Shown: positions 1 to 23,814 of the stretch, one piece after another | Position numbering within the stretch: position 1 is the stretch's first letter | Layout of the letters: every line of letters starts with the position of its first letter | Sequence record: NC_009452.1 | Reading direction: 5' to 3' (one strand) | Length of the DNA stretch: 23,814 bases | Program-made: the position numbers and the translations under genes | The notes under the pieces: generated by a model | Seen by the model: the letters and a program-made list of their open reading frames with translations, nothing else | What the model was told of the DNA's origin: nothing | Database searches by the model: none

Positions 1-15
1 TCCCCCCTTGGGGGA
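1..15 (+). other. Terminal mini-hairpin TCCCCC-CTT-GGGGGA
   Basis: 1-6 is the reverse complement of 10-15. An equivalent motif sits at 23800-23814. Confidence 0.85.
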
Positions 16-127
16 GTCAGTGGAGCATTAGATTTCTATTAATTAGATTATCCCTAACTAATTATTATTTATTCTCTCTTATTATTTTTATGTCTCGCCC
101 CTTTTCTTTCGGGGCATTTCTTTTTTC

Positions 128-2491: not shown

Positions 2492-4453
2492 TTATGAGAG
2501 AATACTATTTAAGTCTATTGGTTCAATTGTTTCTATGTATTTTTCCCATGTCTTTCTGTATTCTTTATGTTCTTGTTCGTCTCTGAACATGCTTCCGAAC
2601 CAGTGTACGTTGTAAGTATACCTTTGTTTAGTATTAAGTGGTGTGAAGATTTTGATCTGATTTGAAAGCATTCCCATTAACACATTGCTATCTTTTTCGG
2701 CTAAAATCTTGTATTGTTGTAAGTTTCTTATCATTATCTTTGTTGGAATTTGTACTCTAACAATTTTACCCTTGGCTAAATAGTTTCCTACGTATTCAAT
2801 AATTTTTTCGGCAATTGACTCATCAACATTGAATCCTCTTAGCTTTATCATTTTTTCTTGTGGGTCGTTCAAAATGTACTGACCATTACCAATTACAATT
2901 GCTTCTCCTACACCTTCTTGTTTTAATTGTCCTAATTGGTCTCCTACTAGTTCAGACTTTATGGGAGCTTTGCTTATTACACTGTCAGTTAAATAACTTA
3001 TAGCGTTAGGGTCTACGTTTTGGATAAAGGTTCTTCCTAAAGCGGTAATCATTGAAGCGTAAATTACATTCTGGAACTTTGCATTGAATCCTATTCTTTC
3101 GCCGAATTTCCCGTATGAACTGTTTAGAATTAACTTGTAAACTTTCTCTAGTGGGTTTTTCTCTTTCTTTAGTTGTAATCTCTTGTTGTATAGGTTATAG
3201 ATAACATCTTTGAAGATTCTATGTTTTGTTATTTTGAATTTCATTGTGTAGTATTGTCCCACTATTTTAATGTCTGGTATTAGTTCATGCTTTTCGTCTG
3301 CAAGTTCGAAATCAAAGAATGAGCCTCTGTTGTACATCATTCTGAGAAGCATCCCATTAGCTTTTGAAGCGACATACTTTCTGTCTTGTTTCAATGTGAT
3401 TTTGTAAATGTAAACATACTTTGCATCTTCATTGAATTGTGTGCCCTTAAGTAGTGGTTCTTCGTTTACTTCAAAACCTTTTTGTGTTTCAACTAATTCT
3501 AATTCTGGCAACCAACTCATCATGAATGGATACATTGAATTGACGTCATACTTGTAAACTTTTTTGAATTTACCTAATTCGTTTGAGTCGAATAACCCGC
3601 CCTTATAAAGTCTCTTTAATGTTAGCTCTATCTCAGTGTATGATCTTAATCCTTTGACAAACTCTGACTGAACTTGTGAAATAATGTAAGTTATAGCGGT
3701 TCTTGGAAGCGTGGACTTTACTTTTATTCCAAAGAGACTGTTCTTTAGAAGCGCTAATTGGTAAGTGGCAATTACATCAAGTTTGTTATACCTAGCTATT
3801 TCTTGTATTGTCTTGGGATCATTGAAATCTAATTTGTCAAAATTAGCCCTTTTTTCTTTGTCTTCCTTCCACTCTTTCATTGTTTGTTCATCAAAGACTT
3901 GAAATCCCATTTCTTGTAGTTTGGTATAATACCTACTGTAGGCTTCATACAAACTCTCACTGTAGAATTGGAGTAGGTTTATTGAGTTTATTGATCTTCC
4001 ATTATAGAGAATTTTGTAGAAGTTCTTGTATCTTTTTATTCTAAGGTTTTTAGTTGTGAAGTAGTTTTCTCCAGTGATTTTCTTTGCGAATTTTGAGTGT
4101 TTGCCTAGAAGAACATAATTAGCTAAACTTACTGGTAAATCATAATCTCCATAGAAGTATGTTTCTTCTGTTAAAAGATCAAGGGCATTTTTAACATCTT
4201 CTGGTTTTCTAATTATTACGTATTTGTATTCAGAACCATCATAAACTCCGAAAAAGATTTCTCTTCCGTTTGTCTCTATGTCGAATGCGCTAATTTGTCT
4301 TGGTTTTTCCTCTTCATTTTCCTCTAGTTTTTCATAATTGATTCTGTGTATAGTAAAGAATCCGCTTTTGATTTTGAATGAAGGGGTTAAGTCTGAAAAA
4401 TCGTTTAACTTGTATTGGATCTTATCGTTTGCGTTATTGAGGATTTGTAGCAT
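2492..4453 (-). CDS. polB: Family B DNA polymerase, protein-primed type
   Basis: ExoI AFDIET, ExoII YGDYDL, ExoIII YNKLDV, motif A YDVNSMYP, motif B KLILNSSYGKFG, ITALGR, motif C variant YLTDS. A long A-to-B insertion is compatible with TPR1. The genome is linear with ITRs. Confidence 0.93.
   Translation of the reverse strand: MLQILNNANDKIQYKLNDFSDLTPSFKIKSGFFTIHRINYEKLEENEEEKPRQISAFDIETNGREIFFGVYDGSEYKYVIIRKPEDVKNALDLLTEETYFYGDYDLPVSLANYVLLGKHSKFAKKITGENYFTTKNLRIKRYKNFYKILYNGRSINSINLLQFYSESLYEAYSRYYTKLQEMGFQVFDEQTMKEWKEDKEKRANFDKLDFNDPKTIQEIARYNKLDVIATYQLALLKNSLFGIKVKSTLPRTAITYIISQVQSEFVKGLRSYTEIELTLKRLYKGGLFDSNELGKFKKVYKYDVNSMYPFMMSWLPELELVETQKGFEVNEEPLLKGTQFNEDAKYVYIYKITLKQDRKYVASKANGMLLRMMYNRGSFFDFELADEKHELIPDIKIVGQYYTMKFKITKHRIFKDVIYNLYNKRLQLKKEKNPLEKVYKLILNSSYGKFGERIGFNAKFQNVIYASMITALGRTFIQNVDPNAISYLTDSVISKAPIKSELVGDQLGQLKQEGVGEAIVIGNGQYILNDPQEKMIKLRGFNVDESIAEKIIEYVGNYLAKGKIVRVQIPTKIMIRNLQQYKILAEKDSNVLMGMLSNQIKIFTPLNTKQRYTYNVHWFGSMFRDEQEHKEYRKTWEKYIETIEPIDLNSILS
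2506..2513 (-). promoter_or_regulatory. TATA box for ORF246, embedded in the 3' end of the polymerase gene
   Basis: CTTAAATA 34 nt upstream of the ATG at 2472. Confidence 0.45.
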
Positions 4454-12118: not shown

Positions 12119-12478
12119 GTGATCAAAATGGAGTATGTGGAACCTTTAGCCCCCTTATACGGGGGAGAATACTCAACAACTGGAATTGTAACACTAAGTG
12201 TAGGAATAGCTTTACTAGTGTTAGCTAACGCTTTTGCTTATGCCCTAGTAAAAGCTTTCGGAATACAGTCATACTATGGAAGACTGTTAGGCGGAATAGT
12301 ATTACTAGTACTATCCATGTTACTGACACTGTCAACTAACTCAATTAATAAATTCAGAGGAGCCTTTACATTTGCTATCGGAGAAATTATCATAGGCGGA
12401 CTTGACGTAATTAATGACAAGTCCGGCTGGTCTCAACCAGTAGTATCTCCAACAGTTGGATGTCAAGGAGGCGCATAA
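12119..12478 (+). CDS. ORF119, small multi-TM protein (ATG at 12128 likely)
   Basis: AAGGTGA SD; three hydrophobic segments. Confidence 0.8.
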   Translation: MIKMEYVEPLAPLYGGEYSTTGIVTLSVGIALLVLANAFAYALVKAFGIQSYYGRLLGGIVLLVLSMLLTLSTNSINKFRGAFTFAIGEIIIGGLDVINDKSGWSQPVVSPTVGCQGGA

Positions 12479-22978: not shown

Positions 22979-23380
22979 ATGTCCATGAAAGAATTCGTTC
23001 AAAAGTTAGACGAAATTCAAGCCAGTTTTTCTTCCCACTTCCCATTAGTTATCATAAACTCAAACTACAAAATAGACAATGGAATTGTTATTTTCGGTAA
23101 GAAAGGTTGGTTAAGGATTAATGAATCAGTACCGATAATGATTAACTACGGTTCACTCATTTTATTAGACACTCCAAAGAATTACATGGTAGGAGTTTAC
23201 AAAAACGTTAACGGCGGGAGAAAAATTAAATCCTATTCACCTTCCAGGTCACAGAAAGCTTTAAATAATCCCAGTAAGATAAGAACAAAACAGACAAACA
23301 ATGATACAACAATCCAACAATCCAATAACACAACAAGCACAAACACAAAACCTAGCTCAAACACAAACACTCAACAATAA
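22979..23380 (+). CDS. ORF133, hypothetical protein whose last ~51 aa are encoded by the ITR
   Basis: Alpha/beta N-terminus; crosses the ITR boundary at 23225 and ends in an N/T/Q-rich tail. Confidence 0.75.
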   Translation: MSMKEFVQKLDEIQASFSSHFPLVIINSNYKIDNGIVIFGKKGWLRINESVPIMINYGSLILLDTPKNYMVGVYKNVNGGRKIKSYSPSRSQKALNNPSKIRTKQTNNDTTIQQSNNTTSTNTKPSSNTNTQQ

Positions 23381-23513
23381 TACCCACTCACAAACCGAAA
23401 GTTTTTTAAACCTTTACCACACACATTATAACCAGAGACACATGACAACAACTCATGACACAAATACCAAAAAGCTTAAATACCAGTTTCACACAATACA
23501 TTCACAGAGAATC

Positions 23514-23687
23514 ATGACAACAGTTACACAGAAACCCTTCACCGCTTCACCTTACATTTTTTCCACTACCCTTAGAACAACACAAACAGACGGTAATAAC
23601 GCTATCAACTCTCACTCACATACTCAAGCAGGTTACAACAACAGTTCAGAAAGATTTTTATACTTGATTTGCACATACATTACTTGA
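23514..23687 (+). CDS. Possible 57-aa ITR-encoded ORF (right copy)
   Basis: AAAAAG-CTTAAATA at 23469-23482, 32 nt upstream. A GCCCC/GGGGC stem follows the stop. Confidence 0.3.
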   Translation: MTTVTQKPFTASPYIFSTTLRTTQTDGNNAINSHSHTQAGYNNSSERFLYLICTYIT

Positions 23688-23799
23688 GAAAAAAGAAATG
23701 CCCCGAAAGAAAAGGGGCGAGACATAAAAATAATAAGAGAGAATAAATAATAATTAGTTAGGGATAATCTAATTAATAGAAATCTAATGCTCTACTGTC

Positions 23800-23814
23800 T
23801 CCCCCTTGGGGGGA
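23800..23814 (+). other. Terminal mini-hairpin TCCCCC-TTG-GGGGGA
   Basis: Self-complementary. The loop reads TT on the same strand as at the left end. Confidence 0.85.

Follow-up and report, generated by a model that had tools for sequence, protein, structure and literature searches.

In the known protein-primed replication systems, synthesis starts internally on a terminal reiteration and the product then slides or jumps back to the end (PMC5175343). Phage phi29 starts at the second base of 3'-TTT and phage PRD1 at the fourth base of 3'-CCCC, sliding-back following in both cases, and adenovirus initiates on 3'-GTAGTA (PMC5175343). At the telomeres of Streptomyces, Palindrome I forms a 13-nt terminal hairpin on which the terminal protein primes at the third G and slides back, and the fold-back of the same palindrome templates the repair of truncated 3' ends (PMC5449611). 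There, Tap/Tpg together with a translesion polymerase patch the ends after replication from an internal origin, and six more palindromes are present. An inverted terminal repeat (ITR) is a feature of protein-primed linear double-stranded DNA replicons, and it is found in Acidianus bottle-shaped virus (ABV; 590 bp) as well as in ABV2 (446 bp). Replication of ABV, which is the type ampullavirus, is only presumed to be protein-primed, and we know of no protein-primed system from an archaeal hyperthermophile that has been characterised biochemically.

The DNA analysed here (the window, 23 814 bp) is the complete linear ABV genome as published (EF432053): its positions 1–1500 are 100% identical to EF432053/NC_009452, the record has the same length of 23 814 bp, and the annotation agrees. 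The GenBank record is flagged circular while the genome is linear, which gives a hint on how the ends may have been defined. Another such hint is that joining the deposited ends (23814 to 1) creates GGGGGGA/TCCCCCC and with it a BamHI (GGATCC) and a Sau3AI (GATC) site.

On the + strand, the left end (1–26) reads 5'-TCCCCCCTTGGGGGAGTCAGTGGAGC and the right end (23789–23814) reads ...GCTCTACTGTCTCCCCCTTGGGGGGA-3', which as a reverse complement becomes TCCCCCCAAGGGGGAGACAGTAGAGC. The left ITR (1–590) equals the reverse complement of the right ITR (23225–23814) at 586 of 590 positions (99.3%), the exceptions being positions 8, 9, 17 and 22, and from position 23 to 590 the two are identical throughout (568/568). 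The initial annotation was right that TT occurs on the same strand at both ends: it stands at 8–9 and at 23806–23807, where a perfect ITR would need AA, and the 12-mer CCCCCTTGGGGG is also a direct repeat, with copies at 3–14 and 23801–23812, both on the + strand. The 12-mer occurs exactly twice in the genome, compared with 0.02 matches expected from shuffling and at least two copies in none of 100 shuffles. What had been overlooked is that four columns of the ITR are mismatched, not two, the others being 17 (T versus A) and 22 (G versus A). All four fall within the first 22 of the 590 positions (P = 1.5e-6, or 5e-5 if they are counted as three events). The + strand has T at the left as well as the right end in three of these columns (8/23807, 9/23806 and 17/23798; the fourth is 22/23793), and at one end or more in every mismatched column. 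When ABV2, which has A at column 17 and G at column 22, is used as the outgroup, ABV deviates from it at columns 8, 17 and 22, and each time the deviating state is T on the + strand; column 9 is uninformative. This bias suggests a systematic cause.

For comparison, metagenome contigs were scanned with a polymerase profile, which yielded 23 ampullavirus-like loci, and ABV2 and ABV3 were added from GenBank. In each ampullavirus-like locus, the closest end of the genome is found downstream of the polymerase gene. Four lineages, namely ABV2, L020 (OGCG01000388.1, the longest contig with a true terminus), L018 and L015, reach 2.4–2.8 kb past the polymerase stop codon and each ends in a C-run; all four termini stem from shotgun metagenome assemblies, that of ABV2 from Illumina data. 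The contig ends of L009, L048, L006 and L022 are truncations rather than termini, and ABV3 is truncated within its ITR. The G-rich end of L019 was rejected as a terminus, as it aligns about 600 nt inside, and for two lineages the contigs from JGI and ENA are interrupted on the right in a variable large gene or fail to reach the left end by 13–550 nt. When IMG/VR was scanned for exact copies of the L020 and L018 termini, no match was returned, and the proteins encoded in the ITRs of ABV, ABV2 and L018 led to GenBank records, to the short contig L057 or to nothing. A second ABV data set was not found, and a recent review of ampullaviruses makes no mention of genome ends.

The comparison of ends across ampullavirus assemblies, which had been proposed in the initial annotation, centres on the C-run. 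In ABV it is a C6 run at positions 2–7 (+ strand), and runs of at least five C number only 12 in the whole genome, the GC content of which is 35%. The ABV2 terminus, CCCCCCTGAGGGGAG, has the structure CCCCCC-TGA-GGGGAG; L020 begins with CCCCCCCAGACGGGGAGG (CCCCCCC-AGAC-GGGGAGG) and L015 with CCCCCCCAGG (CCCCCCC-AGGCCC..., without a G-run partner), so the run is C6 in the first and C7 in the other two. L018 begins with CCTCCCATGGGGGGAGG, that is, CCTCCC-AT-GGGGGGAGG, which starts with CC alone, is not a pure run and counts against sliding-back on the C-run. The outer 320–450 nt of the repeats cannot be aligned between ampullavirus lineages, and because the C-run is shared at the termini in spite of this divergence, it is regarded as selectively kept. 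The initial annotation had entertained the possibility that the outer C6 and the terminal T and A are products of tailing or cloning. For C6 the suggestion fails, since independent shotgun assemblies from four lineages end in the same way and the run must accordingly be real. An origin of the run in a pUC SmaI/BamHI polylinker was likewise rejected, the C6 of ABV2 being derived from Illumina shotgun data.

For the outermost base pair the same suggestion is plausible. The terminal T (position 1, + strand; its partner is A at 23814) is absent from the termini of ABV2, L020, L018 and L015, and the alignment of ABV with ABV2 is collinear from ABV position 2. Judging from these alignments, T1/A23814 probably lies outside the native replicated end, and a non-templated base introduced by run-off sequencing or cloning would be a plausible explanation; we consider it fairly probable that the leading T and trailing A are not copied in vivo. 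This bears on the objection, correct for the sequence as written, that a 3'-AGGGGGG template is unable to regenerate its last base by sliding-back. The deposited T before the C-run does count against sliding-back on the run, but the difficulty with the last base would be removed if the T/A pair is not native.

Behind the C-run, a TT spacer (8–9, + strand; AA at the right end in the ITR sense, and TGA, AGAC or AT(GG) in the relatives) is followed by the inner arm GGGGGAG (10–16, + strand), which is conserved and represents a candidate origin core or GC clamp. The motif GGGGAG is invariant in the left and right ends of ABV and in ABV2 and is present also in L020 and L018; a G-run/GGGGAG after a spacer of 2–5 nt is found in ABV2, L020 and L018, and thus in four of five lineages when ABV is counted. 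The GC content is 0.75–0.81 in nt 1–16 versus 0.30–0.55 in nt 17–116, and in ABV it falls to about 0.3 in the adjoining sequence. ABV positions 1–15 can be folded as T-CCCCC-[CTT]-GGGGG-A, a flush stem of 6 bp closed by a 3-nt loop (-5.3 kcal/mol with DNA parameters at 37 °C), and the 3' strand of the right terminus, CTCCCCC-TT-GGGGGG-A (23799–23814, + strand), folds into a hairpin that is likewise flush, has 6 bp and is assigned the same energy. Flush terminal pairing amounts to 6/6 in ABV and L018, 6/7 in L020 and 4/4 or 5/6 in ABV2, and there is none in L015, so the terminal hairpin is not universal in ampullaviruses. Its stability is no higher than that of shuffled sequences (z = -1 to -2.2) and becomes marginal at 75 °C (-0.7 to -1.8 kcal/mol; energies computed with the ViennaRNA DNA parameters above about 75 °C were discarded, as the structures were physically absurd), and a C.A mismatch between the arms is uncompensated in three lineages. 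For these reasons the pairing is not under strong selection; the features that are maintained are the GGGGAG sequence and the GC richness. Open ends carrying a real mini-hairpin, one of the models put forward initially, are compatible with all this, and Streptomyces Palindrome I provides a worked precedent.

Several further elements lie close to the ends. The TATTAATTAGA block (37–47, + strand) is conserved between ABV and ABV2, where it is equally far from the end, and forms an arm of a 10-nt inverted repeat (37–46/58–67). A hairpin with the structure GCCCC-TTTTCTTTC-GGGGC (N9 between the arms; 97–115, + strand, mirrored at 23700–23718) is conserved at a distance of about 100 nt from the terminus, as it recurs in ABV2 (L001 97–114) and L018 (112–128), with a T-rich stretch following it. 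A terminator scan did not call this hairpin, and terminator and promoter scans of positions 1–1000 stayed at chance level. The 623-nt contig L057 (ERZ27249342 k141_125980), which comes from another sample and is nearly identical to L018, starts exactly at the internal C-run/spacer/G-run hairpin located 112 nt from the L018 end (L018 112–128), and the two differ at the second base of L057, which has C instead of the A of L018 (CCCCCC versus CACCCC). The start of L057 may be a healed, shortened and rewritten terminus, or else an assembly break.

A GC-rich element at 633–690, with the core GGGGTGTCCCC at 655–665 and the pattern ...ACGT...CCGGGGTGTCCCC(T)CCCCCC..., is situated 64–65 nt inward of the ITR boundary. 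It occurs only at the end on the side of the polymerase and is kept in all lineages checked (L001, at 510, and L020, L018, L015, L007, L009 and L011). A pRNA-like non-coding RNA was reportedly proposed in the ABV genome paper, and the GC-rich element presumably corresponds to it; a search against Rfam gave no match anywhere in the genome, this element included. Between the RNA-like element and ORF110 there are a 32-nt tandem direct repeat (TTTCATGTAATACGCAACGG..., 745–808) and a 14-nt repeat, TCAAATTGTTATGA, with copies 53 nt apart (826–892). ORF110 (997–1329, - strand) and ORF99b (1387–1686, - strand) are paralogues, each matching phrog_16101. Outside the ITRs, the only element of the form C(4+)-N(10 or fewer)-G(4+) is CCCCCTTATACGGGGG at 12150–12165, within ORF116. 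The ends of AFV1 (AJ567472; L058 and L059), an Acidianus virus without a protein-primed polymerase, read CGGGGGGGAG... and CGGGGGGGAA...; given these G/C-run ends, termini of this kind recur among linear viruses of hyperthermophiles.

The polymerase of ABV is encoded by ORF653 (2492–4453, - strand) and belongs to family B, organellar/viral (protein-primed) type. It matches PF03175 (DNA_pol_B_2) with an E-value of 2.5e-16 and 60.1 bits (cut-off 25.8) as well as PHROG DNA polymerase families, and these matches group it with organellar and viral polymerases. The Exo and Pol motifs are invariant across 12 ampullavirus polymerases; motif C (residues 487–491) reads YLTDS in all of them and YCDTDS in phi29. 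Searches against PDB sequences, with the single sequence and with a profile, gave no match, and an AlphaFold model (pLDDT 66) retrieved generic archaeal PolB and Pol II as top Foldseek matches with TM scores of about 0.3. An hhalign comparison with the phi29 polymerase covers only the surroundings of motifs B and C, with a probability of 3.7%, and in this weak alignment the segment between these motifs (residues ~450–468), the site of TPR2 in phi29, looks about 18 residues shorter. A homologue of a terminal protein was not detected with Pfam and PHROGs among the ORFs flanking the polymerase gene (ORF163, ORF243 and ORF247). The lack of a recognised terminal protein and of a structural tie to phi29, together with the TPR2 region that appears short in the weak alignment, was counted against protein priming.

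Among the described systems, the comparison with PRD1 drawn in the initial annotation is borne out. PRD1 begins with GGGGATACGTGCCCC and, like ABV, combines a terminal homopolymer and a complementary run behind it (GGGG-ATACGTG-CCCC versus CCCCCC-TT-GGGGG) with a long ITR and a PF03175-type family B polymerase, its terminal pairing being flush at 4/4 (G4-N7-C4). ABV differs in having a C-run and not a G-run, with dCMP accordingly expected as the linked nucleotide, and also in the length of the run (6–7 versus 4), the shorter spacer and the hyperthermophilic archaeal host. With phi29 it shares the location of a gene for a family B polymerase of the protein-primed type near the left end, with a small ORF ahead of it and a structured RNA-like element at the far left, and a terminal reiteration (3'-TTT in phi29), whereas the ITR of phi29 measures 6 bp and has no terminal palindrome. 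Palindrome I of Streptomyces resembles the ABV terminus in being a terminal palindrome of about 13–15 nt that starts with C's on the strand linked to the protein and has a loop of 3 nt, and the C-rich arm on the 5' strand and the short loop are indeed found in ABV. Unlike Streptomyces, ABV has only one further hairpin (97–115), and its 30 ORFs contain no match of the Tap/Tpg type in Pfam, the virus having its own family B polymerase instead. The likeness to the Streptomyces telomere would thus concern a possible mechanism, not membership in a family.

How the same-strand TT came about can be explained in several ways. Covalently closed hairpin termini or fold-back ends, with the deposited sequence representing reads through a TT loop, were invoked in the initial annotation. 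Closed termini are known from rudiviruses, poxviruses and N15, and they would account both for TT on the same strand at the two ends and for the GC-rich palindrome at the tip. Reading through such a loop predicts a continuing palindrome, ...CTCCCCC-TT-GGGGGAG..., but the deposit reads TCCCCCC: the palindrome is over after 5–6 bp, and position 2 holds C although read-through demands T. In ABV2 and L020, too, a C faces the A of GGGGAG. Terminal self-complementarity spans only 4–7 bp in every lineage, with no long palindrome about an apex, and the four independent shotgun assemblies terminate directly behind the C-run and do not turn back along the other strand. Pfam searches of the 30 ORFs revealed no protelomerase, Holliday-junction resolvase or nicking Rep, a weak test given that most of the ORFs match nothing, and the polymerase encoded is of the protein-primed type. 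Closed ends are thus highly improbable, and closed hairpins and C-tailing are both rejected. Parvoviruses and poxviruses offer a related parallel in their flip/flop ends, which, as in ABV, differ by the inverted unpaired centre of a terminal palindrome. Their hairpins are tens to hundreds of nucleotides long, constitute actual closed or self-priming ends and require a nickase or a resolvase, whereas the ABV palindrome comprises 5–6 bp, the ends look open and neither enzyme was found. A functional fold-back telomere with both spacer orientations coexisting, in which the 3' strand folds, templates the repair of nibbled ends and sometimes primes itself, is nevertheless suggested by the flush 6-bp terminal hairpins of the deposited ABV ends and of L018, by the fold-back repair at Palindrome I in Streptomyces (PMC5449611) and by L057, which looks like a healed truncated end rewritten by sliding-back. 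We regard it as unlikely: the C.A mismatch in the arms of ABV2 and L020 is uncompensated, L015 lacks the hairpin, stability is marginal at the growth temperature, columns 17 and 22 are left unaccounted for, and L057 is a single 623-nt contig that possibly reflects a mere assembly break. Somewhat more doubtful still is the bolder idea, suggested by the CCCCCC of L057 in place of CACCCC, that ampullavirus ends are self-healing fold-back telomeres in which the C-run/spacer/G-run module on the 3' strand serves as the template for its own repair, the spacer flips through a template switch so that the two orientations coexist, and the internal copy (97–115) can be promoted to a terminus and rewritten to a pure C-run by stepwise sliding-back.

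A more serious competitor is a finishing artefact, according to which the true ITR is perfect, the TT/AA difference and columns 17 and 22 are miscalls in the terminal Sanger reads of a 2007 project, and T1/A23814 is non-templated or derived from cloning. No part of the ITR is more distant from an end-specific primer site than the 22 nt that hold the four mismatches, unique sequence beginning 590 nt in, and the T bias in the mismatched columns looks systematic. The leading T, seen in no relative, and the restriction site at the joined ends of a record flagged circular fit as well, and differences between the ends of close genomes may, according to the Bam35 paper, reflect the difficulty of sequencing ends capped by a terminal protein (PMC5175343). 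The two ends of ABV2 are identical, spacer included, which favours an artefact and counts against the explanation that we prefer, although this identity may merely reflect the finishing of the assembly. On the other hand, replacing TT by AA exchanges exactly two bases for their complements on the axis of the palindrome, which is unlikely as a random miscall, and end-specific differences in the deposit imply end-specific data. An artefact of this kind is a sizeable possibility that falls somewhat short of an even chance, and the same weight may be given specifically to a miscall of TT versus AA in the outermost 22 nt on either side, which are hard to read; a real inversion of the spacer by template switching comes close to an even chance.

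On balance, and with restrained confidence, we favour the interpretation of the ABV ends as open, protein-capped, protein-primed origins with a C-run serving for sliding-back, a conserved near-palindrome and an inverted spacer. The native 5' end of each strand would be a run of six C. By analogy with PRD1 and phi29, ORF653 and a terminal protein would start within the 3'-GGGGGG template, dCMP being linked opposite one of the internal G residues, and stepwise sliding back would then recover the end, as it does in PRD1 on 3'-CCCC. The G-run/GGGGAG behind the spacer of 2–5 nt would be a conserved part of the origin, and the first 15–18 nt would act as a near-palindrome and GC clamp within an AT-rich repeat. 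Because stepwise sliding-back recopies one internal template base, it could maintain a pure-C 5' arm in spite of the A in the 3' arm. As for the spacer, the arms are self-complementary, so inverting the 12-mer changes only its 2-nt centre and TT versus AA amounts to a single event. Such an inversion may have occurred if the template was switched from one arm to the other in the course of strand-displacement synthesis, as a strand-displacing polymerase would have the displaced strand within reach; spacer inversion is known to arise when the template is switched between short inverted repeats (PMC8604942).

The sequence C6–7, a short spacer and GGGGAG here define the probable ampullavirus origin. 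This definition provides template oligonucleotides, 3'-GGGGGGAACCCCCTC..., for assaying ORF653 and candidate terminal proteins, with dCMP as the predicted protein-linked nucleotide. For the reference genome it means that the first and last base are doubtful, perhaps along with four further positions. Should both the inversion of the spacer and the internal back-up terminus prove real, the termini of these viruses would be linked to telomere repair of the Streptomyces type.
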